A stretch of DNA of 64,000 bases from Anthoceros angustus. Its lineage: Eukaryota > Plantae > Anthocerotophyta. Of the stretch, positions 21,291 to 58,877 are shown piece by piece (the first letter of the stretch is position 1; every line of letters begins with the position of its first letter). The translations under genes were made by a program, and so were the position numbers. The stretch is taken from the NCBI GenBank assembly GCA_010909165.1, contig VJWM01000117.1, positions 372,001-436,000 of the forward strand, written 5' to 3'. The notes under the pieces were generated by a model. It was not told where the DNA came from. It was given only the letters and a program-made list of their open reading frames with translations, and made no database searches.

Positions 21291-23768
21291 TAAAAGGTAG
21301 CCCCTCCTTATAGTGCTAGGGTCAACTAACCATAGCTAGGTAACCTAGTAAAGACAAGGTCGGTTAAACCAGAAACACGTTGTCGGGACAAGGTCGCAGC
21401 TACTTAAGCCCGTTCCCAAGAATCAAGACGGACTGATACCAAAGACGGAGCCCTCCGGCGTCCGGATCTCCATCTCCGAGAAGAGTGATGACATCTTGGT
21501 ATAAGAGCCGAACGATCGACCACTTTCGTGCACGGGATGACTCCAAAGCAGATGGCACTGCCTTGGAGTGATTAAGAGGCAGCGGTATGGGAGCTCCCAG
21601 CGGACCATCGAGGAGTGGGAGAAGCGACGTGAGCGGGAGGTTTTGAACTGTGATCTTTGGACCGAGATTGTTTGCATCTTGCATTGGCTTGACATCCGGT
21701 GGAGAACAGATGAAATTTTGAAGGCGACAAGAGTTTGTAGGCGGAAGGTGTGGGAAAGGAGCCATGGACTTTGGAAGCCAAGAGCTAGAGCAAGATGCAA
21801 GGAGGGGCGAATAGGCAGTCGCGGGGTTTTGGTGCTATATGCAGGAGGCACGCCAATGGTGGCGCCAATAAGTGATTGAAGAACACCCATGACCTGGGCT
21901 CAGCTGGCATTCTATGTCGTGTAGCCCGGGGGCAAGACGGTCACTGGCTTAAGACTCCTAGGAGTCAAGGGTATGCAAGAACTTGACATCCTGGGTGGAG
22001 AACAGATTGAATTTTGAAGGCGACAAGAGTTTGTGAGGCGGAAGGTGTGGGAAAGGAGCCATGGACTTTGGAAGCCAAGAGCTAGAGCAAGATGCAAGGA
22101 GAGGGACTAATGATTTAGTAGTCGCAGGTTTTGGTGCTATATGTGAGGCACGCCAATGGTCGCCAATAAGTGATTGAAGAACACCCATGCGAATGACTGA
22201 CTCAGTCATTCTATGTCGTGTAGCCCGGGGGCAAGACGGTCACGAAGACTCCTAGGAGTCAAGGGTATGCAAGAACTTGGACATCTTGTTGCAAAGCGAA
22301 AAAGATAGCAACAAGAGGCCCATGGGCTCAAGTCGAGGTCTCATAGCCAGCTAGACCTAAAGCATGTCACATTGCATGTGGGTTGTGAGAAGTGCAAGAA
22401 TTGCTAGCTTGGCCCGGCGAGAAGTGGCTAGACAGAGCTCGCCTCAAACATTAGGTTCGAGACGAGACGGTAGGAAGTGGCAACCGCGACGCCTGCCTGC
22501 TTAGCCCACTGTGGAATGTGCGTTATGGTATCGATTCTTCTAATTGCAACAAGTCGATCAATGAGAAGCGACGCGTAAGTGAGATCCGATCGAGCAGCTT
22601 GTTCTTTCAATGATCTCGTTTCCACATGCACCGGATGCACTTACTAGCATCAAACATCATAGCTGAAATTTTGGAGGAGCAACGTCCATGGAGCAGTTGA
22701 GACACGAACGAGCCGGTGTATCTGTAGAGACAATTGGCGCAGCATCTAGGCCATATTGCGCTCGAATGCCTAGCAAGAACGAGGCGGGCCGCGATTGGTC
22801 TCAATAGGCAGCTCAACTTAGGATTTGGTCAAATTCAAATTGCTCGAGTTCGCTCGACGTGGCAAAGATCTTCTCGCAATGCTCTAAACCCGCGATCGGC
22901 CAGGAGAGGTCTTGCATACCAAAGGCGCTGGTCACGACTACCAATCAACCTCACCGACACATTGGCTAACATGTGTCGACGTCGAGATTAAAGTTAGCTA
23001 TGCTTCTCATGATCAATGAGAAGCCGATAAGAGAGCTTATCATGCCACTGGGACCTAATGAAAGGAAGGCCCGCCCATACATAAATGCATGATGAGCCAT
23101 GTCCTTGAGCATAGGCTTTTGCTGCATTGGGATGAGGGACTTGAATTTGGTGCTATCTAGAAATGGCTCTGGGTGCCTCGTTGGGGAAGCTAACACCTCC
23201 TCTCGGTTTTTGGACCACATCCATCCCTCACAACGTACATGCTTAACCGCTTTTGCCCTTGGTACTAATCAGGCGATTCCAGCTCCTAGATGTTAACTCC
23301 CATGCCTTTCACCATATCACAGTTCCTTTGGTATTCTGCTATGGAAAATACCTCACACCAACTTAAATTAAATTAGTTTTTTTCTTTATTGTGGACTTGT
23401 TGCGATCTTAGTTAAGTGCTTCGTATGCATTTGTATCTATCTATCTCTTCTAACGAAAATTATAATTTATAATATTCCATGACTATATTGTGTCTATGTA
23501 ATGACTAAAGGTATGATGACTATATATAATATATAATGACTGTATGAATTAAATTGAGAAAATATTCAAATTGTTCAATAATAAAATTCATAAACATTAG
23601 CAAGTAAGAGAACAAAAGTACAATTTCATAACACACCATTTTGCTATAGGTCTAAAACTAAGATAAAAGCAGATCACGCTTACACTTCTAAAGAGGAATG
23701 TGTTCGCTTTGAAATATGATTAAGTTGCTAGTTTTATCTCTTAACATTTGAGACGTGAAAATTTTCAA

Positions 23769-24760
23769 CTAAGATCTAATCATTATAATTATTGAGAAGA
23801 GCCTTCTACCACGTAAATTTCTAGCAACCTCGTTAGTGCTCATTTGATTCTATCATGTGACCTCTCGCCAAAAGAAGACCTTTCAACGCCCTTTCTAACT
23901 TTCGGATAGCTTTACCATTGGTAGGTATGTTTGGCCCACAATCTGGCCGATAACTATCGTCCTCATTCACTTGGGTTTGTTTGGGCCATCGGGTTTCTAG
24001 GTCATCCTCATTCACGGGTTGGTTTGGGCCACTAGCTTCTAGGTCGTCCTCATTCACGGGTTCGTTTGGGCCACAAGCTTCTAGGTCGTCCTCATTGACG
24101 GGTTCGTTTGGGCCACAAGCTTCTAGGTCGCCCTCATTCACGGGTTCGTTAGGGCCACAAGCTTCTAGGTCATCCTCATTCACGGGTTTGTTAGGGCCAC
24201 AAGCTTCTAGGTCGCCCTCATTCACGTTCGTTAGGGCCACAAGCTTCTAGACAGGATAGCTGCGCTCATTTTCGTGTTTTTTGGGCCACAAACTTCCTTG
24301 CTCTCGGTTTTAGAATTGTACCTACAAAAATTGATAAACGATTTCAAATACTCTACATATCTTTTAAAACATCTTGCTGATCGCTTATCACCAAATGACA
24401 AAAACTAAAATTGTTACCCATGACGGGGGAATATTGCGAGAAGAATCGCTTGCCATGGTTGTAACATTGTGAGAAGAATCATTTGCCGTGGTTGTATGGC
24501 TGTGAGAAGAATCCTTCCAACCTGTTCTCCTTTTCTTTGGCACCTTGCAGTGATCTAAACCCTTCCAAGCCACTATGCATATACTTACAATTGAGGCGCA
24601 ATAAGTTTTCAAGCTCCTACATCCCTCCGATCCAATGAAAGCGTGATATGCTCCGGATGTCGCGTCGTACATGTTGAATCTTGTATCTTGGGAGATAAGA
24701 GCGTGTGGTCCCTTGCCATTACATTTGAAGGTAGTAATATCCTCAATGTAGAGCATAGGC
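23769..24760 (-). pseudogene. PLATZ-like gene, 5'-truncated copy (3' half only)
   Basis: Has LYIEDITTFKCN, the intron and the EDDLEACGPNEPVN repeats. At 24751-24760 (GAGCATAGGC) the sequence jumps back into another part of the unit, removing the first Zn motif. Confidence 0.75.
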
Positions 24761-25389
24761 TTTTACAGATTGGGATGAGGGACTTGAATTTGGTGCTATC
24801 GGCCTAGAATGGTGGTGCCTCGTTGGGCGCAATACCTCCTCTGGTTTTTGACGGACATCCATCCTCCGCAACATGCTTAACAGCGTGCTTGCCCAAACTC
24901 CTGCGATTCCAGTTCCTAGATGTTAACCTCGATGCCTTTCACCATGCGAGTTCCTTTGGTATTCATATGATGATGAAATACCTCACTTAAATTAAATTAG
25001 TTTTTTTCTTTATTGTGGACTTGTTGCGATCTTAGTTAAGTGCTTCGTGCATTTGTATCTATCTATCTCTTCTTGAAAAATTATAATTTATAATATTCCA
25101 TGACTATATCAGGTCTATGTAATGACTAAAGGTATGATGACTATATATAATATATAATGACTGTATGAATTAAATTGAGAAAATATTCAAATTGTTCAAT
25201 AATAAAATTCATAAACATTAGCAAGTAAGAGAACAAAAGTACAATTTCATAACACACCATTTTGCTATAGGTCTAAAACTAAGATAAAAGCAGATCACGC
25301 TTACACTTCTAAAGAGGAATGTGTTCGCTTTGAAATATGATTAAGTTGCTAGTTTTATCTCTTAACATTTGAGACGTGAAAATTTTCAA

Positions 25390-26638
25390 CTAAGATCTAA
25401 TCATTATAATTATTGAGAAGAGCCTTGATTCACGTAAATTTCTAGCAACCTCGTTAGTGCTCATTTGATTGCGACCATTGTGACCGCCTCGCCAAAAGAA
25501 GACCTTTCAACGCTCCTTTTCTCTAACTCGAGTATAGCTCGGCCTCATTGGTAGGTATGTTTGGCCCACAATCTTCCGGTGGGATAACTCGTCCTCATTC
25601 ACGGGTTTGTTTGGGCCATCGGGTTTCTAGGTCATCCTCATTCACGGGTTGGTTTGGGCCACTAGCTTCTAGGTCGTCTCATTCACGTTCGTTTGGGCCA
25701 CAAGCTTCTAGGTCGTCCTCATTGGCCAGGTTCGTTTGGGCCACAAGCTTCTAGGTCGTCCTCATTCACGTTCGTTGGGCCACAAGCTTCTAGGTCATCC
25801 TCATTCACGGGTTTGTTAGGGCCACAAGCTTCTAGGTCGTCCTCATTCACGGGTTTGTTAGGGCCACAAGCTTCTAGATAGCTCGTTCTCATTTTCGTGT
25901 TTTTGGGCCACAAACTTCCTTGCTCTCGGTTTTAGAATTGTACCTACAAAAATTGATAAACGATTTCAAATACTCTTACATATCTTTTAAAACATCTTGC
26001 TGATCGCTTATCACCAAATGACAAAAACTAAAATTGTTACCCATGACGGGGGAATATTGCGAGAAGAATCGTTTGCCATGGTTGTAACATTGTGAGAAGA
26101 ATCATTTTCGTGGTTGTATCATTGTGAGAAGAATCCTTCCAACCGTTCTCCTTTTCTTTGGCACCTTGCAGTGATCTAAACCCTTCCAAGCCACTATGCA
26201 TATACTTGAGGCGCAATAAGTTTTCAAGCTCCTACATCCCTCCGATCCAATGAAAGCGTGATATGCTCCGGATGTCGCGTCGTACATGTTGAATCTTGTA
26301 TCTTGGGAGATAAGAGCGTGTGGTCCCCTGCCATTACATTTGAAGGTAGTAATATCCTCAATGTAGAGCATAGGCGCTAAAAGAGATCAATCAAGTGCAG
26401 ACACCATAGCGTCGATTCACTTTTCGAGCATCAATACTTCGTGCCCTGCATGTGAATTCTTACAACATTCGTTGCAAAATGGATCATCTTGGCATTGAAT
26501 ACAAAACTTATTGCATCCTGATTTTGCCATGTGAGGATGTAACGTGCACTTCTTATGATAGTCATGTTGAACAAATATTGGTAACCAATCAAAAGTGGCA
26601 CCATATCACCTCACTAGAGTTCCAGATCTTGCATACAT
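25390..26638 (-). CDS. PLATZ-like Zn-binding protein with acidic 14-aa repeat tail, copy 1 (frameshifted as assembled)
   Basis: Same sequence as the other copies; Zn motif region 26440-26600; intron ~25946-26040; 42-bp repeats ~25590-25880. Confidence 0.7.
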
Positions 26639-29600: not shown

Positions 29601-31937
29601 ACTTGGACATCTTGTTGCAAAGCGAAAAAGATAGCAACAAGAGGCCCATGGGCCTCAAGTCGAGGTCAGGCTACTAGACCTAAAGCATGTCACATTGCAT
29701 GTGGGTTGTGAGAAGTGCAAGAATTGCTAGCTTGGCGAGAAGTGGGCGAGAGGTAGGCTCACCTCAAACGCATAGGTTCGAGGCGAGGCGGTAGGAAGTG
29801 GCGGCTCAGTGGCGCTTCCAGTCACCTGGAATGCGCTATATCGATTCTTCTAATTGCAACAAGTCGATCGGTAGCGTCACGTGAGATCCAATCGAGCGCT
29901 TTATTCTTTCAATGATTCTGGTTCCACATGCACCGGATGCGACTTACTAGCATCAAACATCATAGCTGAAATTTTGGAGGAGCAACGTCCATGGATGCCG
30001 AGACACGAACGAAGTCTTGCATGTATCCGAGACAATTGCGCAGCATCTAGGCCATATTATGCGCTTCGAGTCGCCTAGCAAGAACGAGGGCGGGCCGATT
30101 GCTGGTCTCAATAGTGCTCAACTTAGGATTTGCCGAAATTCAAATTGCTCGTTAGTTCGGCGTGCGGCATCTTTCTCTCGCAATACCGTAAACTCACGCG
30201 ATCGCCTACCAGGAGGTCTTGCACGATAAAGGCTATGGTCACACTACCAATCAAACCTCACCGACACATTGGCTAACATGTGTCGTATCGTCAGGATTGA
30301 GATGGCGCTTATGTCTCATGATCAATGAGAAGCGATGGGAAGAGAGCTTATCATGCCACTGGACCTAATGAAAGGAAGGCCCAGCCATACATAAATGCAT
30401 GATGAGCCATGTCCTTGAGCATAGGCTTTGCATTGGGATGAGGGACTTGAATTTGGTGCTATCGGCCTAGAATGGTTTGGTGCCTCAATAGCAATACCCT
30501 CCTCCTGGTTTTTGGACGGACATCCATCCTCGTCAACGTACATGCTTAACCGCTGCTTGCCCTTGGTACTAACTGCATGCATTCCAGCCTAGATGTTAAC
30601 CTCGGCCTTTCACCATATGCAGTTCCTTTGAGTACATCACAGGATGATGAAATACCTCACACCAACTTAAATTAAATTAGTTTTTTTCTTTATTGTGACT
30701 TGTTAAGGTCGATTCAGTTATGTGCAGATTTGTATCTATCTATCTCTTCTAATTGCAACAAGTCGATCGGAGCGACGTGCGTGAGATCCGTGGGCGGCTT
30801 GTTCTTTCAATGATCGGTTTCCACATGCACGGATGCGACTTACTAGCATCAAACATCATAGCTGAAATTTTGGAGGAGCAACGTCCATGGCCAGTTGAGA
30901 CACGACGAGTCTTGCATGTATCCGAGACAATTGCGCAGCATCTAGGCCATATTGCGTTCGAGTCGTCTAGCAAGAACGAGGGCGTGATTGCTGGTCTCAA
31001 TAGTGCTCAACTTAGGATTTGCGAAATTCAAATTGCTCGTTAGTTCGGCGTGCGGCATCTTTCGCAATGCTCAGGCTGTCGCGGCCGCGATTGTGGAGAG
31101 GTCTTGCACGATAAAGGCGTCGCGACTACCAATCAAACCTCTGGACACATTGGCTAACATGTGTCGACGTTCGAGATTGTTAGGCTTATGCTTCTCATGA
31201 TCAATGAGAAGCGATGGGAAGAGAGCTTATCATGCCACTGGACCTAATGAAAGGAAGGCCCGATACATAAATGCATGATGAGCCATGTGAGCATAGGCTT
31301 TCTGATTGGGATGAGGGACTTGAATTTGGTGCTATGCCTAGAATGGTCGTGCCTCGTTGAGCTAGCGACCTCCTCGGTTTTTGGACGGACATCCATCCTC
31401 GTCAACGCATGCTTAACCGCGTGCTTGCCCTTGGTACTAACTGCGATTCAGGTTCTAGATGTTAACCTCGGGCGGCACCATATGCGAGTTCCTTTGGTAT
31501 TCTTATGATGATGAAATACCTCACACCAACTTAAATTAAATTAGTTTTTTTTCTTTATTGTGGACTTGTTGCGATCTTAGTTAAGTGCTTCATGATTTGT
31601 ATCTATCTATCTATCTCTTCTAACGAAAATTATAATTTATAATATTCCATGACTATATTGTGTCTATGTAATGACTAAAGGTACGAATGACTATATATAA
31701 TATATAATGACTGTATGAATTAAATTGAGAAAATATTCAAATTGTTCAATAATAAAATTCATAAACATTAGCAAGTAAGAGAACAAAAGTACAATTTCAT
31801 AACACACCATTTTGCTATAGGTCTAAAACTAAGATAAAATGATCACGCTTACACTTCTAAAGAGGAATGTGTTCGCTTTGAAATATGATTAAGTTGCTAG
31901 TTTTATCTCTTAACATTTGAGACGTGAAAATTTTCAA

Positions 31938-33170
31938 CTAAGATCTAATCATTATAATTATTGAGAAGAGCCTTGATTCACGTAAATTTCTAGCAACCTC
32001 GTTAGTGCTCATTTGATTGCGACCATTGTGACCAGCCTCCGCCAAAAGAAGACCTTTCAACGCCCTTTCTAACTCGATAGCTCGGCCTCATTGTAGGTAT
32101 GTTTGGCCCACAATCTTCCGGGCCGGGATAACTCGTCCTCATTCACGGTTTGTTTGGGCCACTAGCTTCTAGGTCATCCTCATTCACGGGAAGGTTTGGG
32201 CCACTAGCTTCTAGGTCGTCCTCATTCACGGGTTCGCTTTACAAGCTTCTAGGTCGTCCTCATTGACGGGTTCGTTTGGGCCACAAGCTTCTAGGCTGCT
32301 CATTCACGGTTCGTTAGGGCCACAAGCTTCTAGGTCATCCTCATTCACGGGTTTGTTAGGGCCACAAGCTTCTAGGTCGCCCTCATTCACAGTTCGTTAG
32401 GGCCACAAGCTTCTAGTCGGGATAGCTCGCTCTCATTTTCGTGTTTTTGGGCCACAAACTTCCTTGCTCTGCTTTAGAATTGTACCTACAAAAATTGATA
32501 AACGATTTCAAATACTCTTACATATCTTTTAAAACATCTTGCTGATCGCTTATCACCAAATGACAAAACTAAAATTGTTACCCATGACGGTGAATATTGC
32601 GAGAAGAACTGCTCGCCATGAAGCATTGTGAGAAGAATCATTGTCATTTTGTATCATTGTGAGAAGAATCCTTCCAACCTGTTCTCCTTTTCTTTGGCAC
32701 CTTGCAAGGTGATCTAAACCCTTCCAAGCCACTATGCATATACAATTGAGGCCGCATTAAGTTTTCAAGCTCCTACATCCCTCCGATCCAATGAAAGCGT
32801 GATATGCTCCGGATGTCGCTATTCATACATGTTGAATCTTGTATCTTGGGAGATAAGAGCGTGTGGTCCTGGCTATTACATTTGAAGGTAGTAATATCCT
32901 CAATGTAGAGCATAGGCGCTTAAAAGAGATCAATCAAGTGCAGACACCATAGCGCCGATTCACTTTTCAATAATACTGGCCTGTATGTGAATTCTACAAC
33001 ATTCGTTGCAAAATGGATCATCTTGGCATTGAATACAAAACTTATTGCATCCGATTTTGCCATGTGAGGATGTAACGTGCACTTCTTATGATAGTCATGT
33101 TGAACAAATATTGGTAACCAATCAAAAGTGCACCATATCACCTCGCCTAGAGTTCCGATCTTGTATACAT
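31938..33170 (-). CDS. PLATZ-like protein, copy 2 (frameshifted as assembled)
   Basis: ORF track 32920..33141 gives WCTFDWLPIFVQHDYHKKCTLHPHMAKS; 42-bp repeat block ~32130-32415. Confidence 0.7.
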
Positions 33171-37188: not shown

Positions 37189-38426
37189 CTAAGATCTAAT
37201 CATTATAATTATTGAGAAGAGCCTTGATTCACGAAATTTCTAGCAACCTCGTTAGTGCTCATTTGATTGCGACCATTGTGACGATCTACTTCCAAAAGAA
37301 GACCTTTCAACGCCCTTTTCTCTAACTCGATAGCTCGGCCTCATTGGTAGGCATGTTTGGCCCACAATCTTCCTGGATAACTCGTCCTCATTCACGGGTT
37401 TGTTTATCGGGCTTCTAGGTCATCCTCATTCACGGGTTGGTTTGGGCCACTAGCTTCTAGGTCGTCCCCTCATTCACGTTCGCTTTGGGCCACAAGCTTC
37501 TAGGTCGTCCTCATTGACGTTCGTTTGGGCCACAAGCTTCGTCATCCTCATTCACGGTTCGTTAGGGCCACAAGCTTCTAGGTCATCCTCATTCACGGGT
37601 TTGTTAGGGCCACAAGCTTCTAGGTCGTCCTCATTCACGGGTTTGTTAGGGCCACAAGCTTCTATGGGATAGCTCGTTCTCATTTTCGTGTTTTTGGGCC
37701 ACAAACTTCCTTGCTCTCGGTTTTAGAATTGTACCTACAAAAATTGATAAACGCATTTCAAATACTCTTACATATCTTTTAAAACATCTTGCTGATCGCT
37801 TATCACCAAATGACAAAACTAAAATTGTTACCCATGACGGGAATATTGCGAGAAGAATCGCTTGCCATGGTTGTAACATTGTGAGAAGAATCATTTGCCG
37901 TGGTTGTATCATTGTGAGAAGAATCCTTCCAACCCGTTCTCCTTTTCTTTGGCACCTTGCGTGATCTAAACCCTTCCAAGCCACTATGCATATACTTACA
38001 ATTGAGGTCGCAATAAGTTTTCAAGCTCCTACATCCCTCCGATCCAATGAAAGCGTGATATGCTCGGATGTCGCGTCCGCATATTGAATCTTGTATCTTG
38101 GGAGATAAGAGCGTGTGGTCCCCTCATTACATTTGAAGGTAGTAATATCCTCAATGTAGAGCATAGGCGCTAAAAGAGATCGAATCTCGTGCATACCATA
38201 GCGTCGATTCACTTTTGAATAAATAATACTGTGCCCCAGATGTGAATTCTTACAACATTCGTTGCAAAATGGATCATCTTGGCATTGAATACAAAACTTA
38301 TTGCATCGATTTTGCCATGTGAGGATGTAACGTGCACTTCTTATGATAGTCATGTTGAACAAATATTGGTAACCAATCAGGCGGGCACCATATCATCTCA
38401 GCTAGAGTTCCAGATCTTGCATACAT
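37189..38426 (-). CDS. PLATZ-like protein, copy 3 (frameshifted as assembled)
   Basis: ORF 38021..38362 contains CNKFCIQCQDDPFCNECCKNSHLGH; ORF 37803..38024 contains KTYCDLNCKYMHSG..RKVPKKRRTG. Confidence 0.75.
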
Positions 38427-42435: not shown

Positions 42436-43669
42436 CTAAGATCTAATCATTATAATTATTGAGAAGAGCCTTCCCACGAAAATTTCTAGCAACCTCGTTA
42501 GTGCTCATTTGATTGCGACCATTGTGACCGGTCCGCCAAAAGAAGACCTTTCAACGCTCCTTTTCTAACTCGAGATAGCTCGGCCTCATTGGTAGGCATG
42601 TTTGGCCCACAATCTTCCGCCGGGATAACTCGTCCTCATTCACGGTTTGTTTGGGCCACAAGCTTCTAGGTCATCCTCATTCACGTTGGTTTGGGCCACT
42701 AGCTTCTAGGTCTCCTCATTCACGGTTCGTTTGGGCCACAAGCTTCTAGGTCGCCCTCATTGACGGTTCGCTTTGGGCCACAAGCTTCTAGGTCGCCCTC
42801 ATTCACGGGTTCGTTAGGGCCACAAGCTTCTAGGTCATCCTCATTCACGGGTTTGTTAGGGCCACAAGCTTCTAGGTCGTCCTCATTCACGGTTCGTTAG
42901 GGCCACAAGCTTCTAGGGATAGCTCGCTCTCATTTTCGTGTTTTTTGGGCCACAAACTTCCTTGCTCGGTTTTAGAATTGTACCTACAAAATTGATAAAC
43001 GATTTCAAATACTCTTACATATCTTTTAAAACATCTTGTTGATCGCTTATCACCAAATGACAAAACTAAAATTGTTACCCATGATGTGAATATTGCGAGA
43101 AGAATCGTTGCCATGGTTGTAACATTGTGAGAAGAATCATTTGCCGTGGTTGTATCATTGTGAGAAGAATCCTTCCAACCCGTTCTCCTTTTCTTTGGCA
43201 CCTTGCGGTGATCTAAACCCTTCCAAGCCACTATGCATATACTTACAATTGAGGCTGCAATAAGTTTTCAAGCTCCTACATCCCTCCGATCCAATGAAAG
43301 CGTGATATGCTCCGATGTCGCGTCTGCATATGTTGAATCTTGTATCTTGGGAGATAAGAGCGTGGTCCCTGTCATTACATTTGAAGGTAGTAATATCCTC
43401 AATGTAGAGCATAGGCGCTAAAAGAGATCAATCAAGTGACACCATAGCCGATTCACTTTTCAATAAATAATACTTCAGGCCGTGATGAATTCTTACAACA
43501 TTCGGTAAAATGGATCATCTTGGCATTGAATACAAAACTTATCAGATCCTGATTTTGCCATGTGAGGATGTAACGTGCACTTCTTATGATAGTCATGTTG
43601 AACAAATATTGGTAACCAATCAAAAGTGCACCATATCACCTCGCCTAGAGTTCCGGATCTTGCATACAT
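42436..43669 (-). CDS. PLATZ-like protein, copy 4 (frameshifted as assembled)
   Basis: ORFs 43493..43720 (EEMYARSG..WLPIFVQHDYHKKCTLH..KFCIQC) and 43155..43412 (GCRSLKTYCSLNCK). Confidence 0.75.
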
Positions 43670-46600: not shown

Positions 46601-48089
46601 ACATCTTGTTGCAAAGCGAAAAAAGATAGCAACAAGAGGCCCATGGGCCCCGAAGTCGAGGTCTTGCTAGCCAGCTAGACCTAAAGCATGTCACATTGCA
46701 TGTGGGTTGTGAGAAGTGCAAGAATTGCTAGCTTGGCCTGGCGAGAAGTGGCGACTAGCTGCTCCAACATTAGGTTCGAGACGAGACGGTAGGAAGTGGC
46801 AGCTCCGTGAGTTCAAGCGAGTCGGAATGTGCGTTATGGTATCGATTCTTCTAATTGCAACAAGTCGATCAATGAGAAGCGACGGCGTGAGATCCAATCG
46901 AGCAATTTTGTTCTTTCAATGATCCGGTTTCCACATGCACCGGATGCGACTTACTAGCATCAAACATCATAGCTGAAATTTTGGAGGAGCAACGTCCATG
47001 GGCGGTTGAGACACGAACGAGTGCCGCATGTATCCAGAGACAATTGCGCAGCATCTAGGCCATATTGCTCGAGTCGTCTAGCAAGAACGAGGGCGGGCCG
47101 TGATTGCTGGTCTCAATAGTGCAGCTCAACTTAGGATTTGCGAAATTCAAATTGCTCGAGTTCGCTCGACGGCAAAGATCTTCGCAATCGGAAAACCCGC
47201 ATGCGACCGCCGATTGTGGAGAGGTCTTGCACACCAAAGCGCGGCCGCGACTACCAATCAAACCTCACCGGACACATTGGCTAACATGTGTCGACGTCGA
47301 GATTGTTAGGCTTATGCTTCTCATGATCAATGAGAAGCCGATGGGGAAGAGAGCTTATCATGCCACGGGATCTAATGAAAGGAAGGCCCACCATACATAA
47401 ATGCATGATGAGCCACGTCCTTGAGCATAGGCTTTTATGATTGGGATGAGGGACTTGAATTTGGTGCTATCGGCCTAGAATGGTGGCAGGCCTTCGCTAA
47501 ATACCTCCGGTTTCTGTTTTTGGACGGGACATCCATCCCTCGTCAACGACATGCTTAACCGCGTGCTTGCCCTTGGTACTAAGCATGCGATTCCGGTTCC
47601 TAGATGTTAACCTCGGGCGGCCTTTCACCATATGCGAGTTCCTTTGGTATTATCATATGATGATGAAATACCTCACACCAACTTAAATTAAATTAGTTTT
47701 TTTCTTTATTGTGGACTTGTTGATCTTAGTTAAGTGCTTCGTATGCGATTTGTATCTATCTATCTCTTCTAACGAAAAATTATAATTTATAATATTCCAT
47801 GACTATATTGTGTCTATGTAATGACTAAAGGTAGAATGACTATATATAATATATAATGACTGTATGAATTAAATTGAGAAAATATTCAAATTGTTCAATA
47901 ATAAAATTCATAAACATTAGCAAGTAAGAGAACAAAAGTACAATTTCATAACACACCATTTTGCTATAGGTCTAAAACTAAGATAAAAGCAGATCACGCT
48001 TACACTTCTAAAGAGGAATGTGTTCGCTTTGAAATATGATTAAGTTGCTAGTTTTATCTCTTAACATTTGAGACGTGAAAATTTTCAAC

Positions 48090-49240
48090 TAAGATCTAAT
48101 CATTATAATTATTGAGAAGAGCCTTGATTCACGTAAATTTCTAGCAACCTCGTTAGTGCTCATTTGATTGCGACCATTGCATCAGTCTACGCCAAAAGAA
48201 GACCTTTCAACGCTCCTTTTCTCTAACTCGATAGCTCGGCCTCATTGGTAGGCATGTTTGGCCCACAATCTTAGGGATAACTCGTCCTCATTCACGGGTT
48301 GGTTTGGGCCATCGCTTCTAGGTCATCCTCATTCACGGGTTGGTTTTGACGGGACATCCATCCTCGTCAACGACATGCTTAACCGCGTGCTTGCCCTTGG
48401 TACTAACTGTATGCGATTCCAGTTCCTAGATGTTAACCTCGGGCCTTTCACCATATGCGAGTTCCTTTGGTATTATCATATGATGATGAAATACCTCACA
48501 CCAACTTAAATTAAATTAGTTTTTTTCTTTATTGTGGACTTGTTGCTGATCTTAGTTAAGTGCTTCGATTTGTATCTATCTATCTCTTCTAACGAAAAAT
48601 TATAATTTATAATATTCCATGACTATATTGTGTCTATGTAATGACTAAAGGTATGATATGACTATATATATAATATATAATGACTGTATGAATTAAATTG
48701 AGAAAATATTCAAATTGTTCAATAATAAAATTCATAAACATTAGCAAGTAAGAGAACAAAAGTACAATTTCATAACACACCATTTTGCTATAGGTCTAAA
48801 ACTAAGATAAAATGTATCACGCTTACACTTCTAAAGAGGAATGTGTTCGCTTTGAAATATGATTAAGTTGCTAGTTTTATCTCTTAACATTTGAGACGTG
48901 AAAATTTTCAACTAAGATCTAATCATTATAATTATTGAGAAGAGCCTTCACGTAAATTTCTAGCAACCTCGTTAGTGCTCATTTGATTGCGACCATTACT
49001 GCATCCAAAAAAAGACCTTTCAACGCCTCCTTTTCTCTAACTCGATAGCTCGGCCTCATTGGTAGGTATGTTTGGCCCACAATCTTCCGGCCGGGATAAC
49101 TCGTCCTCATTCACGGTTTGTTTGGGCCACAAGCTTCTAGGTCATCCTCATTCACGGGTTGGTTTGGGCCACTAGCTTCTAGGTCGTCCTCATTCACGGG
49201 TTCGTTTGGGCCACAAGCTTCTAGGTCGTCCTCATTGTGT
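48090..49240 (-). pseudogene. Two partial 3'-end copies of the PLATZ-like gene
   Basis: 3' coding end plus a few 42-bp repeats at ~48090-48340 and ~48915-49240, each ending at a back-jump junction. Confidence 0.7.
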
Positions 49241-49307
49241 GTTCGCTTTGAAATATGATTAAGTTGCTAGTTTTATCTCTTAACATTTGAGACGTGAAAA
49301 TTTTCAA

Positions 49308-50503
49308 CTAAGATCTAATCATTATAATTATTGAGAAGAGCCTTCACGTAAATTTCTAGCAACCTCGTTAGTGCTCATTTGATTGCGACCATTGTCCTCC
49401 GCCAAAAGAAGACCTTTCAACGCCTCCTTTTCTCTAACTCGGATAGCTCGGCCTCATTGGTAGGTATGTTTGGCCCACAATCTTTCGGGATAACTCGTCC
49501 TCATTCACGGGTTTGTTTGGGCCATCGCTTCTAGGTCATCCTCATTCACGGGTTGGTTTGGGCCACTAGCTTCTAGGTCGTCCTCATTCACGGGTTCGTT
49601 TGGGCCACAAGCTTCTAGGTCATCCTCATTCAGGTTCGTTAGGGCCACAAGCTTCTAGGTCATCCTCATTCAGGTTCGTTAGGGCCACAAGCTTCTAGGT
49701 CGTCCTCATTCACGGGTTTGTTAGGGCCACAAGCTTCTAGCCGGGATAGCTCGTTCTCATTTTCGTGTTTTTGGGCCACAAACTTCCTTGCTCTCGGTTT
49801 TAGAATTGTACCTACAAAAATTGATAAACGCATTTCAAATACTCTTACATATCTTTTAAAACATCTTGCTGATCGTTTATCACCAAATGACAAAACTAAA
49901 ATTGTTACCCATGGCGGGAATATTGCGAGAAGAATCGTTGCCATGGTTGTAACATTGTGAGAAGAATCATTTGCCGTGGTTGTATCATTGTGAGAAGAAT
50001 CCTTCCAACCTGCTTCTCCTTTTCTTTGGCACCTTGCAGTGTGATCTAAACCCTTCCAAGCCACTATGCATATACTTACAATTGAGGTCAATAAGTTTTC
50101 AAGCTCCTACATCCCTCCGATCCAATGAAAGCGTGATATGCTCCGGATGTCGCGTCCGTACATGTTGAATCTTGTATCTTGGGAGATAAGAGCGTGTGGT
50201 CTGTCATTACATTTGAAGGTAGTAATATCCTCAATGTAGAGCATAGGCGCTAAAAGAGATCGAATCAAGTGCGTACACCATAGCGTCGATTCACTTTTCG
50301 AATCAATACTGTGCCAGATGTGAATTCTTACAACATTCGTTGCAAAATGGATCATCTTGGCATTGAATACAAAACTTATTGCATCCCGATTTTGCCATGT
50401 GAGGATGTAACGTGCACTTCTTATGATAGTCATGTTGAACAAATATTGGTAACCAATCGGTGCACCATATCACCTCGGCTAGAGTTCCGGATCTTGCATA
50501 CAT
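49308..50503 (-). CDS. PLATZ-like protein, copy 5 (frameshifted as assembled)
   Basis: ORF 50303..50515: MYARSGTLAEVIWCTDWLPIFVQHDYHKKCTLHPHMAKSGCNKFCIQCQDDPFCNECC. With SHLGH from copy 3 this fits PLATZ motif C-x2-H-x11-C-x2-C-x5-C-x2-C-x4-H-x2-H. Confidence 0.78.
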
Positions 50504-53500
50504 CTCTTCCGACAAACAGCTACAAAGTTACAATGTAAGATCATTAATACTTTCAACCTTTAACACCAAAATTCATGCTAAAATCAAAAGTAAAACTATA
50601 TGTAGATTGAACCACTTATCTGCAGGTCTAAAAGTAGTATATATAAATAACCTACTTACAAAAATAGCCTGTGAGTCCCAAACAATACGAATAAACATTG
50701 TACACGTTTAATCACACATATATAGAGGTAACCAAGCACAATATTTCGATAATAGAACTCTTGAGTGCACATACAATCATTTCGAGATGTAGATCACATT
50801 GGATATGAATAAAGTGCAAAATCCATTATTTTTGTTTACTTTTTATTATCATAATATCTTTAATATTATAGCTAGATGTGTGATAAAACCACTTCATTTA
50901 GTACTGCGATATATATGTCGGATTCCCTTTTCTACTACATGATATGGTAGTGTGGAAAGAAACCCCAAAGGTTATCGTGAAGGATTGAAGAGCTAGTGGA
51001 TCAAATTTCAATTTCTTACCACTCTTACAATCTTGTAACAAGGAACATAAACGGACCTAACTTATAACGATGCGGGATAGGGTGATGAGGAGACATTATC
51101 ATCATTGACATTGCACATGGTAATGCTAGTGAAACTTTGAGGGTGCGACCTAGCTAGCTTACTCCCCCTTTCTTCTCCAACATTGTATTGTTCTTTGTTC
51201 GAGGTGTTTGGTATTCAATAAATGTTGCACCATGTGCACATCTATCACACTAAGCTTGCTCATCCCACCAAAGTTATCCAAGGAACATCATCAATTGATA
51301 GAGTCTAACGGGCCCTCTTACGTCTCTGATGTTGTGCACATTTTTCTAGGAAATGATCACTAACTCGAGCGCTCCATGTTCGCTTTGTTCTATTGTTTTT
51401 CTAGATAAGAACTTTTAGCTACAATGAAGGACAATGTCGTCTACATTAAAACTTCATGCAGTAAGTAGAATGTGAATTAGAACTTCCTGCAATTAAGTCA
51501 AAGGTGTTTAGATTAGAACAATTCATGCAGTCGAGGACAATATTCGCATTACAACTTCTTGTAATTCAAATATAGTCAAGGAATACTTCTATTAAGTTAG
51601 AACTTTATGCACTCATGGCTACGACTTGTGGATTATAACTCCTTGCAATACTTCCAAAGGCATTGTCTAAGGCGGAACTTCTTGAAATCATGGACTATAT
51701 CATGAATGACATGTATCATGAATCGCCTCAATTTGTTGATATGCTTATGAAGCACGTGCATAGCATTTACATCGAGGTAGTGTTGCAATCCGAGTGTTTA
51801 GAGTTTTTGTCTCAAGCTTTCACATGATTTCCTTAGGCTTAGCCATCCTATGTTATGATGTGCAATTGAGCCTAGATCGTCTTGGCAATTTTGCAAGTCA
51901 CGTAAAGAAACATTTCCCTCTTTGGCTCGGCTCGAGTGGTGATCACCATAGCTTTTGCAAGCTTTACGGAATCATGCATGTCATGACTCGTTGTATAAAT
52001 ATTTCACGTGCACAACCTTGATCGTATAGTTTTAAATTTTAAAAATTAAAATATCAATTAAAACTTTATATTTCATTCTTATAACATTCGATTGAAAAAA
52101 TTATATTCAATTCTTTGCCTAGCTTAAACTTTAGGATTGCTTTTCTTGAGTATTAATGTGTATGCCGATGAGCATGGCATGGTGGTGCCTTGGAATGAAG
52201 CCCCACATTTACTCCGTAGTAACCAATAGCGTTTGCAGGCCGCAAGTGGAGGACTACGTCTCCGAATGTGTCACAGCCGATTGATGCAAGTCACGTAAAG
52301 AAACATTTCCCTCTTTGGCTCGGCTCGAGTGGTGATCACCATAGCTTTTGCAATGTTTCGGAATCATGCATGTCATGACTCGTTGTATAAATATTTCACG
52401 TGCACAACCTTGATCGTATAGTTTTAAATTTTAAAAATTAAAATATCAATTAAAACTTTATATTTCATTCTTATAACATTCGATTGAAAAAATTATATTC
52501 AATTCTTTGCCTAGCTTAAACTTTAGGATTGCTTTTCTTGAGTATTAATGTGTATGAGCATGGCATGGTGGTGCCTTGGAATGAAGCCCCACATTTACTC
52601 CGTAGTAACCAATAGCGTTCTATGCATGCAAGTGGAGGACTACGTCTCCGAATGTGTCACTGATTGATGCAAGCTTCACCGTGAAGGACAAAGTCACCGC
52701 CACCTATGATGGACATCACTATGACGAGCTAGCGATCTCGAGGGTCGTGGCGGCATAGATGGTAGCTGCAAGCACGAGGCGCTAGCTAGAAGACTAGGTC
52801 GATTAGAGTGAGTGACTAACCTAGGGTCAACTAACCATAGCTAGGCAAACTCTAGTAAAGACAAGGTCGTTAAACCAGAAACACGTCTTTGGGACAAGGT
52901 CGCAGCTACTTAAGCCCGTTCCCAAGAATCAAGACGGACTGATACCAAAGACGGAGCCCTCCGGCCCCGGATCTCCATCTCCGAGAAGAGTGATGACATC
53001 TTGGTATAAGAGCCGAACGATCGGACCAGCACGTGGGATGACTCCAGAGATGGCACCGTCTTGGAGTGGATTAAGAGGCAGTATGGGAGCTGGAGCGGAC
53101 CATCGAGGAGTGGGGAGAAGCGACAGGCGGGAGGTTTTGGGGTCCGTGTGATCTTTGGACCGAGATTGTTTGCATCTTGCATTGGCTTGACACCAAGGAG
53201 AACAGACGGAAATTTTGAAGGCGCACAAGAGTTTGTGAGGCGGAAGGTGTGGGAAAGGAGCCATGGACTTTGAAGCCAAGAGCTAGAGCAAGATGCAAGG
53301 AGGGACGAATAGGCAGTCGCGGTTTTGGTGCTATATGTGCAGGGAGGCACGCCAATGGCTGCCAATAAGTGATTGAAGAACACCCATGCGAATGACTCGA
53401 TTCAGTTGGCATTCTATGTCGTGGTAGCCCGGGGGCAAGACGGTGACGAAGACTCCTAGGAGTCAAGGGCATGCAAGAACTGGACATCTTGTTGCAAAGC

Positions 53501-56135
53501 GAAAAAGATAGCAACAAGAGGCCCATGGGCCTCAAGTCGAGGTCTTGCTAGCTAGACCTAAAGCATGTCATGACTCGTTGTATAAATATTTCACGTGCAC
53601 AACCTTGATCGTATAGTTTTAAATTTTAAAAATTAAAATATCAATTAAAACTTTATATTTCATTCTTATAACATTCGATTGAAAAAATTATATTCAATTC
53701 TTTGCCTAGCTTAAACTTTAGGATTGCTTTTCTTGAGTATTAATGTGTATGCCGATGAGCATGGCATGGTGCCTTGGAATGAAGCCCCACATTTACTCCG
53801 TAGTAACCAATAGCGTTTGCAGGCCGCAAGTGGAGGACTACGTCTCCGAATGTGTCACAGGATTGATGCAAGCTTCACCGTGAAGGACAAAGTCACCGCC
53901 ACCTATGATGGACATCACACCGAGCTAGCGATCTCGAGGGTCGTGGCAAGATAGATGGTAGCTGCAAGCACGAGGCGCTAGCTAGAAGACTAGGTCGCTT
54001 AGAGTGAGTGACTAACCTAGGGTCAACTAACCATAGCTAGGCAAACTCTAGTAAAGACAAGGTCGTTAAACCAGAAACACGTCTTTGGGACAAGGTCGCA
54101 GCTACTTAAGCCCGTTCCCAAGAATCAAGACGACCAGATACCAAAGACGGAGCCCTCCGGCCCCGGATCTCCATCTCCGAGAAGAGTGATGACATCTTGG
54201 TATAAGAGCCGAACGATCGGACCAGCACGTGGATGACTCCAGCAGATGGCACCGCCTTGGAGTGGATTAAGAGGCAGGTATGGGAGCTGGAGCGGACCAT
54301 CGAGGAGTGGGGAGAAGCGACAGGCGGGAGGTTTTGGGGTCCGTGTGATCTTTGGACCGAGATTGTTTGCATCTTGCATTGGCTTGACACCGCGAGAATG
54401 ATTTGAAATTTTGAAGGCGCACAAGAGTTTGTGAGGCGGAAGGTGTGGGAAAGGAGCCATGGACTTTGAAGCCAAGAGCTAGAGCAAGATGCAAGGAGGG
54501 ACGAATAGACAGAGTCGCAGGTTTTGGTGCTATATGCGGAGGCACGCCAATGGCGCCAATAAGTGATTGAAGAACACCCATGCGAATGACTCGATTCAGT
54601 TGGCATTCTATGTCGTGGTAGGGGGCAAGACGGTGACAAGACTCCTAGGGAGTCAAGGGCATGCAAGAACCTCGACATCTTGTTGCAAAGCGAAAAAGAT
54701 AGCAACAAGAGGCCCATGGGCCTCAAGTCGAGGTCTTGCTAGCTAGACCTAAAGCATGTCACATTGCATGTGGGTTGTGAGAAGTGCAAGAATTGCTAGC
54801 TTGGCTGGCGAGAAGTGGGCGAGGCAGTGGCTCGCCTCAAACATTAGGTTCGAGGCAGACGGTAGGAAGTGGCAGCCCGTGATAGCTTCAAGCGAGTCAT
54901 TGGAATGTGCGTTATGGTATCGATTCTTCTAATTGCAACAAGTCGATCGAAGCGGCGTCGTGAGATCCGGCTGGGCAACTTGTTCTTTCAATGATCCGTT
55001 TCCACATGCACCGGATCGACTTACTAGCATCAAACATCATAGCTGAAATTTTGGAGGAGCAACGTCCATGGAGCTTGAGACACGAACGAGTCTTGCATGT
55101 ATCCAGAGACAATTGCGCGAGCATCTAGGCCATATTGCTCGAGTCGCCTAGCAAGAACGAGGGCTGATTGCTGGTCTCAATAGTGTGCTCAACTTAGGAT
55201 TTGCGAAATTCAAATTGCTCGAGTTCGTTCGACGCTGATCTTTCCAACAATTAAAACCCGCCGCATCGCCATTGTGGAGAGGTCTGACAAATTAAAGGCG
55301 TGCGACTACCAATCAAACCTCACCGGACACATTGGCTAACATGTGCGTTCGAGATTGCTAGGCTTATGCTTCTCATGATCAATGAGAAGCCGGATGGGAA
55401 GAGAGCTTATCATGCCATCGATCTAATGAAAGGAAGGCCCACCATACATAAATGCATGATGAGCCACGTCCTTGAGCATAGGCTTAAGCGATTGGGATGA
55501 GGGACTTGAATTTGGTGCTATCGGCCTAGAATGGTGATTGCCTAGAAGCATAACGACCTCCTCTGGTTTTTGGACGGACATCCATCCTCGTCAACGACAT
55601 GCTTAACCGTGCTTGCCCTTGGTACTAACTGCGATTCCAGTTCCTAGATGTTAACCTCGGGCGGCCTTTCACCATATGCGAGTTCCTTTGGTATTCAAGT
55701 ATGATGATGAAATACCTCACACCAACTTAAATTAAATTAGTTTTTTTTCTTTATTGTGGACTTGTTGCGATCTTAGTTAAGTGCCCGATGATTTGTATCT
55801 ATCTATCTCTTCTAACGAAAAATTATAATTTATAATATTCCATGACTATATTGTGTCTATGTAATGACTAAAGGTATGATAATGACTATATATAATATAT
55901 AATGACTGTATGAATTAAATTGAGAAAATATTCAAATTGTTCAATAATAAAATTCATAAACATTAGCAAGTAAGAGAACAAAAGTACAATTTCATAACAC
56001 ACCATTTTGCTATAGGTCTAAAACTAAGATAAAAAGCAGATCACGCTTACACTTCTAAAGAGGAATGTGTTCGCTTTGAAATATGATTAAGTTGCTAGTT
56101 TGATCTCTTAACATTTGAGACGTGAAAATTTTCAA

Positions 56136-57425
56136 CTAAGATCTAATCATTATAGTTATTGAGAAGAGCCTTCAGTTCACGTAAATTTCTAGCAACCTCG
56201 TTAGTGCTCATTTGATTGCGACCATTGTGACCAGTCTCTGCCAAAAGAAGACCTTTCAACGCTCCTTTCTCTAACTCGGATAGCTCGGCCTCATTGGTAG
56301 GCATGTTTGGCCCACAATCTTCCGGGATAACTCGTCCTCATTCACGGGTTTGTTTGGGCCACCGGCTTCTAGGTCATCCTCATTCACGGGTTGGTTTGGG
56401 CCACTAGCTTCTAGGTCGTCCTCATTCACGGTTCGCTTTGGGCCACAAGCTTCTAGGTCATCCTCATTCACGTTCGTTTGGGCCACAAGCTTCTAGGTCG
56501 TCCTCATTCACGGGTTCGTTAGGGCCACAAGCTTCTAGGTCATCCTCATTCACGGGTTTGTTAGGGCCACAAGCTTCTAGGTCATCCTCATTCACGGGTT
56601 CGTTAGGGCCACAAGCTTCTAGGTCCTCATTCACGGTTTGTTTGGGCCACTAGCTTCTAGGTCGTCCTCATTCACGGGTTTGTTTGGGCCACAAACTTCC
56701 TTGCTCTCGGTTTTAGAATTGTACCTACAAAATTGATAAACGATTTCAAATACTCTTACATATCTTTTAAAACATCTTGTTGATCGTTTATCACCAAATG
56801 ACAAAACTAAAATTGTTACCCATGACGGCGGGAATATTGCGAGAAGAATCGTTTGCCATGGTTGTAACATTGTGAGAAGAATCATTTGCCGTGGTTGTAT
56901 CATTGTGAGAAGAATCCTTCCAACCCGTTCTCCTTTTCTTTGGCACCTTGCGGTGTGATCTAAACCCTTCCAAGCCACTATGCATATACTTACAATTGAG
57001 GCGCAATAAGTTTTCAAGCTCCTACATCCCTCCGATCCAATGAAAGCGTGATATGCTCGGATGTCGCGTCCGTACATGTTGAATCTTGTATCTTGGGAGA
57101 TAAGAGCGTGTGGTCCCTGTCATTACATTTGAAGGTAGTAATATCCTCAATGTAGAGCATAGGCGCTAAAAGAGATCTACGAAGTCTGCAGACACCATAG
57201 CGTCGATTCACTTTTCGAATCAATACTGTGCCTCGCATGTGAATTCTTACAACATTCGTTGCAAAATGGATCATCTTGGCATTGAATACAAAACTTATTG
57301 CATCCGATTTTGCCATGTGAGGATGTAACGTGCACTTCTTATGATAGTCATGTTGAACAAATATTGGTAACCAATCAAAAGTGGCACCATATCACCTCGG
57401 CTAGAGTTCCGGATCTTGCATACAT
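56136..57425 (-). CDS. PLATZ-like protein, copy 6 (frameshifted as assembled); 95-nt GT-AG intron at 56725-56819
   Basis: Donor catgg|gtaacaa, acceptor tttgtag|gtac; exon 2 reads YNSKTESKEVCGP then (NEDDLEACGPNEPV)n. Confidence 0.75.
56330..56690 (-). repeat. 42-bp coding minisatellite (EDDLEACGPNEPVN), present in every PLATZ-like copy
   Basis: Unit GGGCCACAAGCTTCTAGGTCGTCCTCATTCACGGGTTCGTTA, ~8 copies here, 6-8 in the other full copies. Confidence 0.95.
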
Positions 57426-58877
57426 CTCTTCCGACAAAACTACAAAGTTACAATGTAAGATCATTAATACTTTCAACCTTTAACACCAAAATTCATGCTA
57501 AAAATCAAAAGTAAAACTATATGTAGATTGAACCACTTATCTGCAGGTCTAAAAGTAGTATATATAAATAACCTACTTACAAAAATAGCCCAGAGTCCCA
57601 AACAATACGAATAAACATTGTACACGTTTAATCACACATATATAGAGGTAACCAAGCACAATATTTCGATAATAGAACTCTTGAGTGCACATACAATCAT
57701 TTCGAGATGTAGATCACATTGGATATGAATAAAGTGCAAAATCCATTATTTTTGTTTACTTTTTATTATCATAATATCTTTAATATTATAGCTAGATGTG
57801 TGATAAAACCACTTCATTTAGTACACGCGATATATATGTCGGATTCCTTTTCTACTACATGATATGGTAGTGTGGAAAGAAACCCCAAAGGTTATCGTGA
57901 AGGATTGAAGAGCTAGTGGATCAAATTTCAATTTCTTACCACTCTTACAATCTTGTAACAAGGAACATAAACGGACCTAACTTATAACGATGCAGGATAG
58001 GGGATGAGGAGACATTATCATCATTGACATTGCACATGGTAATGCTAGTGAAACTTTGAGGGTGCGACCTAGCTAGCTTACTCCCCCTTTCTTCTCCAAC
58101 ATTGCATTGTTCTTTGTTCGAGGTGTTTGGTATTTAATAAATGTTGCACCATGTGCACATCTATCACACTAAGCTTGCTCATCCCACCAAAGTTATCCAA
58201 GGGACCATCATCAATTGATAGAGTCTAACGGGCCCTCTTCTGTCCTACAGTGTTGTGCACATTTTTTCTAGGAAATGATCACCTAACTCGAGCGCTCCAT
58301 GTTCGCTTTGTTCTATTGTTTTTCTAGATAAGAACTTCTAGCTACAATGAAGGACAATATTCTACATTAAAACTTCATGCGATGGCGAATGTGAATTAGA
58401 ACTTCCTGCAGTTAAGTCAAAGGTGTTTAGATTAGAACAATTCATGCAGTCGAGGACAATATTCGCATTACAACTTCTTGTAATTCAAATATAGTCAAGG
58501 AATACTTCTATTAAGTTAGAACTTTATGCACTCATGGCTACAACTTGTGGATTATAACTCCTTGCAATACTTCCAAAGGCATTGTCTAAGGCGGAACTTC
58601 TTGAAATTATGGACTATATCATGAATGACATGTATCATGAATCGCCTCAATTTGTTGATATGCTTATGAAGTACGTGCATAACATTTAAATGGAGGTAAC
58701 ATTGCATCACGAAATCAAACTAGCTAGTAGCGATCTCAAACTAGCTAGTAGCGATCGTGTACTGGCGCGAGAGAATTAGGGGAACTCTCAGGTACACACC
58801 TGTGTGGTGAATGTAGGGGTGGACACCGAGAAATTAAAATTTTAGAAGTACAATTTTTTTTCCGAATGGAGTATAAT

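Follow-up and report, generated by a model that had tools for sequence, protein, structure and literature searches.

The window analysed here, a stretch of 64,000 nucleotides from the genome of Anthoceros angustus, contains a head-to-tail array of a gene whose predicted product opens with a PLATZ-type zinc-binding domain. The locus is probably a young or continually homogenised tandem array of a divergent PLATZ-like gene, methylated and silenced, in which most of the divergence between copies stems from consensus errors at 5-methylcytosine. We propose that a segment of about 5.2 kb carrying one such gene expanded by unequal crossing-over; that the apparent 5-15% divergence would, like the frameshifts, stem mostly from long-read consensus errors where CG and CHG sites carry 5-methylcytosine, errors that short-read polishing would have been unable to repair inside a repeat; and that the array would be heterochromatic and transcriptionally silenced in the sequenced tissue. 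If the errors do mark 5-methylcytosine at CG and CHG sites, the array would therefore be densely methylated in both contexts.

Architecture of the array

In a self-BLAST of the window, all matches within the array lie on the same strand, and each unit carries one minus-strand gene, as a sequence-only reading of the same DNA had described (Table 1). That reading put the unit at ~5.3 kb; the array stands, and the measured base unit is 5218-5265 bp in units C, D and E (unit D, 35955-41172, served as reference). Further start-to-start spacings of 1.6 kb and 6.5-6.9 kb result from truncations and internal duplications, which are in register with the unit. The whole gene region is present in six copies (B to G), copy A retains only the C-terminal two thirds, and tail-only fragments occur in the partial-unit stack and at 54918-56621, in agreement with the six full and three partial copies counted earlier. 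The two repeats of the GC-rich sub-segment are ~95.6% identical to one another. Long AT-rich spacers had also been described: an AT-rich segment does lie upstream of each gene, but it accounts for only ~2.2 kb per unit (36-38% GC), the remainder being ~50% GC. With direct repeats that each carry a gene and a variable unit composition, the locus is a tandemly arrayed gene cluster. Scanning the window for Rfam families and tRNAs returned no match, and Pfam gave nothing credible for the ORFs of the flanks, where a gene lies at 58878-60545.

Table 1. Features of the array, in window coordinates.
Feature	Position	Strand	Evidence and remarks
Whole tandem array	21316..58698	.	self-BLAST; ~7 unit equivalents plus internal duplications; base unit ~5.2 kb
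Gene copy A, partial, starting within exon 1 at a unit junction	23776..24760	-	alignment; predicted intron 24322-24417
Gene copy B	25397..26638	-	exon 1 26041-26638, predicted intron 25944-26040, exon 2 25397-25943
Gene copy C	31945..33170	-	alignment, PLATZ profile match
Gene copy D	37196..38426	-	N-terminus CPPDWLP; PLATZ profile E 5e-10
Gene copy E	42443..43669	-	reads YCSLNCK
Stack of partial units, gene 3' end and acidic-repeat part only	46840..49740	-	self-BLAST
Gene copy F	49315..50503	-	66 aa from Met open at N-terminus
GC-rich unit sub-segment of 1.2 kb (unit positions ~3850-5218), twice repeated	52285..54860	.	self-BLAST
Gene copy G	56143..57425	-	single open frame VLIRK to TCTDATS
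42-bp repeats in exon 2, 14-aa acidic unit LEACGPNxPVNEDD	56335..56699	-	TRF and frames; 8.8 copies

A divergent PLATZ-like gene

The gene is predicted to consist of two exons on the minus strand, separated by a GT..AG intron of ~95 nt, and to encode a protein of ~370-410 aa. In order, this protein would comprise the PLATZ-type N-terminal zinc-binding domain, the basic stretch KVPKKRR and, past the site of the predicted 95-nt intron, another basic stretch and 6-9 acidic 14-aa repeats, a build that would be usual for a nuclear DNA-binding factor. The underlying 42-bp repeats, most numerous in copy G, number 6-7 in the other units (TRF). The elements named in the earlier reading (N-terminal peptide, CSLNCK-type motif, KVPKKRR, acidic tail and the 95-nt interval bounded by GT..AG) are all present in the sequence, the interval lying for example at 56725-56819, and it was also right that every copy is frame-broken: none has an intact ORF as assembled, and the longest open piece is 148 aa.

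PLATZ proteins are defined by an N-terminal motif, C-x2-H-x(10-12)-C-x2-C-x(4-8)-C-x2-C-x(3-7)-H-x2-H, and a C-terminal motif, C-x2-C-x(10-11)-C-x3-C (PMC7728089). A regular expression finds the first exactly, as C-x2-H-x11-C-x2-C-x5-C-x2-C-x4-H-x2-H, in copy B as assembled, bearing out the spacing described in the earlier reading, and copies D and G match it from C-x2-C onward. The C-terminal motif is complete in no copy or composite, the assembled sequence offering only C-x6-C-x3-CK; the true sequence here is uncertain because the stretch just upstream sits in an error hot spot.

The Pfam check suggested at the outset came back negative, with no PF04640 match at E<=10 on any of 12 unmodified pieces and only zf-B_box at E 0.02-0.03. 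A PLATZ profile that we built from 7 PF04640-bearing PLATZ proteins matches each of the six copies in unmodified pieces, with E from 5e-16 to 4e-5 (copy B, 4.8e-16); for a composite with X at the breaks the score is 66 bits (E 4e-19, Z=1636). The envelope of the composite spans profile positions 13-198, but only the zinc-binding region, to ~140, is a meaningful match, and the N-terminal finger supplies most of the score. When the open N-terminal 66-aa piece of copy F was used as query against the protein library (1.84e9 representatives), phmmer retrieved the PF04640-bearing proteins P0006 and P0007 at E~4e-4; tblastn similarity to PF04640-bearing proteins reached E 1e-13, and the top ESM Atlas cluster was PLATZ/B-box (0.92). 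Four other library candidates, P0001, P0003, P0004 and P0008, were discarded as spurious His/Cys-rich repeat proteins, the PDB sequence search yielded only chance cysteine-rich matches, and the C-terminal piece gave no lead in ESM Atlas. Exact motif, phmmer, profile and ESM Atlas thus agree that the N-terminal domain is PLATZ-type. Lacking both a PF04640 match in any piece and a complete second zinc motif, the gene falls outside the canonical PLATZ type; it appears to be a very divergent, lineage-specific PLATZ-like gene.

How far does the likeness to known PLATZ genes go? The array gene shares with the family (PF04640; pea PLATZ1 type) the exact N-terminal motif, the IRK that follows it and a domain end of the form ..RSL..YC(S/G)LNCK. 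Growth by tandem duplication is likewise usual there, being a known major route of family expansion that accounts for 21 of the 62 wheat PLATZ genes (PMC7728089). Unlike PLATZ genes, the array gene has neither a PF04640 match nor, as assembled, the C-x2-C half of the second motif; its predicted product exceeds the 145-275 aa of wheat PLATZ proteins and has acidic 14-aa repeats at its end; and its copies make up an array of near-identical 5.2-kb units, not a small group of diverged neighbours.

Among 1.84 billion representatives of ~15 billion proteins, a single relative, P0002, is closer to the array gene than canonical PLATZ proteins are. P0002 is a 267-aa protein on a Logan contig of SRR33208241, a public short-read assembly. 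It shares 46% identity over the zinc finger and can be aligned through to ..YCSINCKLAREGLNAF; it has a marginal PF04640 match (18 bits), a clear match to our PLATZ profile (E 5e-24) and the cysteine pattern C-x3-C-x6-C-x3-C. In contrast to the array gene it is single, intronless, set among ordinary genes and without an acidic repeat tail, and outside the zinc finger nothing at its locus resembles the window, in DNA or in coding sequence. A homologue search from P0002 found only P0002 itself, and no protein more than 50% identical to the N-terminal domain of the array gene occurs among the representatives of ~15 billion predicted proteins.

Copy differences and their origin

As assembled, the copies are 85-95% identical to one another, and their differences sit in tiny clusters, mostly at CG and CHG sites. 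Gap openings are at least as frequent as mismatches (for example, 195 versus 189 over 5.3 kb in self-BLAST). A CG is present in 120 of the 159 variable clusters found across three full units, compared with 16% of invariant control windows; a variable column touches 65% of CG sites and 78-86% of CAG, CTG, CCG and CGG sites, against ~24% of CAA, CAT, CTT and CTA sites. The six gene copies tell the same story: 364 of their 374 variable columns fall in 66 clusters, leaving 10 isolated substitutions, 8 of them transitions, and identity rises from 91.4% over all columns to 99.7% outside the clusters. At 10 clusters the six copies carry six different variants. With the basecallers of 2018-19, 5-methylcytosine inside CC(A/T)GG accounted for ~70% of nanopore consensus errors (PMC6591954), and the pattern, as read from the assembly, appears to be the signature of such errors at 5-methylcytosine.

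Short reads point the same way. A contig from run X1, and another from X3 (a related organism), add a T after 57305 to give AATCAGGATGC; this CAG site lies in copy G, where the insertion mends a 1-nt loss and restores K-S-G-C-N-K-F in frame. Together with the clustering at CG and CHG sites, this sustains the view that the frameshifts are mostly assembly artefacts. A majority consensus of six or seven copies is still frameshifted, because the same sites are hit by errors in every copy. At the hot spot YGVC-SLLAPM, four of the six copies have an in-frame TGA, and only copies D and G pass in frame, with different sequences (copy D reads YGxx..SLLAPM there); the TGA could be a real shared lesion. 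A dynamic-programming search for stop-free paths was set aside as a test of intactness, since several paths in different frames exist and the existence of one proves little alone.

Might the array instead be truly decayed, with real 5-15% differences including indels, a gene long dead, and hot spots where methylated cytosines have truly hypermutated? In favour of this, every copy is broken as assembled, four copies have the TGA just described in common, no RNA was found, and there are real CpG transitions between 42-bp repeat units that are common to all copies. Deamination produces C>T transitions, yet indels here are at least as common as substitutions, and a single site can show up to six variants in six copies that are 99.7% identical in between. 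The CpG observed/expected ratio of 0.83 shows that CpG is not depleted, the short-read contig restores the frame at 57305, and of the 66 short-read contigs on 55800-61000 (2.3 kb of that stretch being unique flank), 54 resemble the window at 95% or more. We therefore consider a decayed pseudogene array unlikely. The 99.7% identity outside clusters and the error signature argue that the array is young or homogenised, and probably densely methylated, and the true copies may well have open frames.

Expression and the question of a selfish locus

RNA run X2 has zero depth on 55800-58757, though a neighbouring gene is covered, in a comparison that draws on assembled contigs from very few runs; no RNA runs are listed for gene B. 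The look for spliced transcripts proposed in the sequence-only reading thus turned up none in the reachable data. Silencing would agree with this absent RNA coverage. Short-read contig depth on the array is 2-6 times that of the flank, a ratio that gives no true copy count. In the related organism, X3 pieces overlapping exon 1 have ~86-87% identity and no frame-breaking gaps, and one X3 exon 1 contig has a depth of 197 versus 75 for the flank. One contig of this organism links 58731 with 55982, which may point to a 2.75-kb unit there.

The array shares with D4Z4/DUX4 its head-to-tail kilobase units, each with an ORF of DNA-binding-protein type, and, probably, a methylated and silent state. The analysis, which drew on one assembly, gave no evidence of copy-number-dependent derepression, a stabilising last unit or any expression; organism and protein family have no relation to those of D4Z4/DUX4, and the likeness is one of architecture alone. 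An active macrosatellite of this or another selfish kind, switched on in a special stage, for instance in reproductive tissue, and encoding a PLATZ protein that binds its own A/T-rich spacer, seems to us quite unlikely. Its appeal lies in the kilobase units with their transcription-factor-like ORFs, in the AT-rich segment upstream of each gene, in the exon sequence kept at raised depth in the related organism, and in PLATZ1, which is cited in PMC7728089 as binding A/T-rich DNA non-specifically. Against it stand the lack of any transcript or splice joint in the reachable data and the incomplete second zinc motif, which is said to be needed for DNA binding; self-binding of the spacer and a selfish or D4Z4-like mechanism are not supported. 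It is very unlikely that the unit represents all or part of a transposable element that captured a PLATZ gene and then multiplied in tandem, through rolling-circle or aberrant transposition for instance: the neighbourhood is transposon-rich, with a CACTA element at ~8-14 kb, but the unit lacks terminal inverted or long terminal repeats, Pfam found nothing credible and no transposase, integrase or helicase domain in 10 ORFs from its non-PLATZ part, the array ends without recognisable termini or target-site duplication, and the copies are strictly head-to-tail at a single locus.

Implications

A silenced tandem gene cluster is thus the most likely reading, ahead of a new kind of selfish locus. 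Under it, the sole reason why ORF and protein catalogues lack an entire gene cluster is the mis-calling of methylated repeats, and the apparent 85-95% identity would badly mislead the dating of the duplications, since the real identity would be ~99.7%. In an assembly of native long reads, the same error pattern could itself show where CG and CHG sites are methylated, which may serve other windows of this genome. We speculate, as an improbable extension, that the array is a plant counterpart of a transcription-factor macrosatellite, in which intact, almost identical genes encoding a new PLATZ-derived factor are kept silent by CG and CHG methylation and released only in a particular stage or upon a change in methylation or copy number. 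For the PLATZ family, the locus documents a very divergent derived subfamily with an acidic repeat tail that has been amplified and apparently silenced and that, if expressed in some stage, would be a candidate dosage-amplified regulator.

Layout of the array and its flanks

Self-comparison of the window places all repeats between 21316 and 58698 on the same strand, and the N-terminal peptide quoted by the sequence-only reading occurs on the minus strand of every full unit, confirming an array with one minus-strand gene per unit. Relative to unit D (5218 bp), which served as reference, unit starts lie 5.2 kb apart in mid-array; loss or duplication of pieces changes this spacing to 1.6 kb or 6.5-6.9 kb elsewhere, reflecting the layout of complete and partial units. 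Each unit comprises an AT-rich segment of about 2.2 kb (36-38% GC) and another segment of about 50% GC. The unit lacks terminal inverted and long terminal repeats, ten ORFs from outside the gene yielded no transposon-type protein domain, neither array end has recognizable termini, and Rfam and tRNA scans of the window were empty.

Left of the array lie small tandem repeats that bear no relation to it, with periods of 57/112, 60, 67-73, 59 and 174 nt, and an AT-rich block. The neighboring ORF has neither a Pfam domain nor a homologue in the protein search. In sample S1, this gene region (58816-60950) exists in two forms. One matches the window exactly (RNA contig depth ~23); the second differs by ~5%, is much commoner in RNA (depth ~346) and seems likely to be a diverged paralogue elsewhere.

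Features of the window (array units from self-comparison)
Feature	Position	Remarks
Small tandem repeat	2040-2429	left flank
Small tandem repeat	4077-4268	left flank
AT-rich block	8000-14000	37-40% GC; GC skew strongly positive (+0.26 to +0.37)
Small tandem repeat	18449-18665	left flank
Small tandem repeat	20323-20860	left flank
Unit A	22529-24760	cut at unit position 2214
Unit B	24751-28412	gene region retained
Unit C	30737-35909	complete
Unit D	35955-41172	complete; reference
Unit E	41220-46173	complete
Partial-unit stack	46840-49740	
Unit F	49495-52300	gene region retained
Partial-unit stack	52285-56621	
Unit G	56374-58698	gene region retained
Neighboring ORF	58878-60545	minus strand; 555 aa

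Differences between copies

Why should every gene copy be frameshifted as assembled? Pairwise identity between copies is 85-95%, with gap openings at least as frequent as mismatches, and their alignment consists of long identical runs interrupted by very small clusters in which substitutions and indels are mixed. Across six gene copies, 364 of 374 variable columns fall inside 66 such clusters (hot spots) and only ten substitutions are isolated; identity is 91.4% over all columns and 99.7% outside clusters, and at ten clusters the six copies carry six different variants. In the three full units, CG occurs inside 120 of 159 variable clusters versus 16% of size-matched invariant windows. The share of sites touched by a variable column is 65% for CG and 78-86% for CAG, CTG, CCG and CGG, against ~24% for CAA, CAT, CTT and CTA. 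CpG observed/expected is 0.83, that is, without depletion. The array is young or homogenized.

Real divergence cannot produce this clustered pattern. The differences look like consensus errors at 5-methylcytosine in native-DNA nanopore data, a platform that we infer; with 2018-19 basecallers, ~70% of consensus errors lay within the 5mC motif CC(A/T)GG (Wick et al., PMC6591954). One contig of the short-read run X1 and one of X3, a run of a related organism, insert a T after 57305, which gives ..AATCAGGATGC.., a CAG site, and restores the K-S-G-C-N-K-F frame in copy G. Taken with the error clusters, this repair indicates that most of the frameshifts arose in assembly, at cytosines that are probably methylated. 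As judged from the error pattern, methylation of the array is probable at both CG and CHG. The assembled unit has about threefold fewer CAG and CTG (23 and 20 per 5.2 kb) than CAA, CAT or CTT (125-143), probably from basecaller garbling of methylated CHG sites. In that case, counts of motifs are unreliable in such regions of the assembly.

The predicted protein and its reading frame

The protein was read off copy pieces that are open as assembled. It starts with Met, and copy D has CPPDWLP at its N-terminus, corresponding to PPWL in canonical PLATZ proteins. Next come, in order, the zinc finger, H-x2-H-EVLIRK, a middle part (..LYIEDITTFKCN..), ..GCRSLKTYC(S/G)LNCKYMHSGLEGF, KVPKKRR and a Ser/Thr/Asn-rich stretch ending ..IPAVM-G. 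After a 95-nt GT..AG interval come TILKPRARKF.., six to nine 14-aa units LEACGPNxPVNEDD (42-bp repeats), and ..LLNNYND before the stop. The CSLNCK-type motif, KVPKKRR and acidic repeat tail described previously are thus all present in open pieces; of the canonical intron, the interval exists, and splicing over it is a prediction only, its phase agreeing with the longest of the variants at the hot spot immediately upstream of the donor site.

All frame breaks fall on hot spots. Because stop-free paths through these exist in several frame combinations, such a path is weak evidence of an open gene. Four of six copies have an in-frame TGA between YGVC and SLLAPM, a hot spot that only copies D and G cross in frame, with differing sequences. 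X3 short contigs overlap exon 1 at ~86-87% identity without frame-breaking gaps, one at depth 197 versus 75 for the flank, mildly favoring a conserved, multi-copy coding sequence. No X3 contig matches the spacer at 85% or above, though coverage holes carry no proof. One X3 contig (depth 46.5) jumps from 58731 to 55982, a step back of 2750, hinting that the tandem unit of that organism is ~2.75 kb, the gene plus AT-rich spacer without the GC-rich half.

Relation to the PLATZ family

Copy B as assembled contains the first PLATZ zinc motif in full, C-x2-H-x11-C-x2-C-x5-C-x2-C-x4-H-x2-H (PMC7728089), with exactly the spacing claimed by the sequence-only reading. A phmmer search with a 66-aa N-terminal piece of copy F returned eight matches among 1.84 billion representatives, none above 50% identity. 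Those judged real are P0002 (267 aa, from a Logan contig of SRR33208241; 46% identity, E 2e-6), P0005 (E 3e-4), which has no Pfam domain match, and P0006 and P0007 (E ~4e-4), whose PF04640 matches score 52 and 77 bits. After collecting five further PF04640-bearing proteins, we built a PLATZ profile from seven in all; it matches P0002 across the whole domain (E 5e-24) and P0005 at E 1e-17. In the six-frame window translation, its sole significant matches are unmodified stop-to-stop pieces from all six copies (E 4.8e-16 to 4e-5). Open pieces combined into a composite, with an X marking every break, reach 66 bits (E 4e-19, Z=1636); the alignment is meaningful over the zinc-binding region, up to about profile position 140, and the N-terminal finger contributes most of the score. 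In the ESM Atlas, the N-terminal piece adjoins a Streptophyta cluster of PLATZ/B-box type (score 0.92), with which it has 196 features in common.

However, PF04640 never matched any of 12 different unmodified pieces, the best Pfam result being a weak zf-B_box match (E 0.02-0.03), and the second zinc motif, C-x2-C-x(10-11)-C-x3-C, is absent from the copies as assembled, with only C-x6-C-x3-CK found. Because profile and phmmer similarity come without these two features, the gene is best described from its sequence as PLATZ-like, a homologous yet divergent variant and not a canonical member.

Copy number, expression and comparison with known systems

Word depth of short-read contigs is 48-68 on the array (some bins up to 150) versus ~14-32 on the flank, so the copies number more than one or two, although contig depth gives no count. 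RNA run X2, made from the sample whose DNA best covers the window, covers the neighboring gene, some of its contigs being identical to the window; its depth on 55800-58757 is zero, and no RNA run is listed for gene copy B. The RNA data examined give no indication of array expression, spliced reads included.

Tandem duplication is known as a main route of PLATZ family growth, accounting for 21 of 62 wheat genes (PMC7728089). The array gene is unusual in how far it diverges from all known PLATZ proteins and in its acidic repeat tail; the array itself is unusual in the near-identity and number of its units and in its inferred methylation. The likeness to D4Z4 is architectural only, and binding of the spacer by the array's own protein is an idea proposed by the sequence-only reading, whose observation is confirmed and whose interpretation is partly supported: the locus is a genuine tandem array of genes that are PLATZ-like but divergent.
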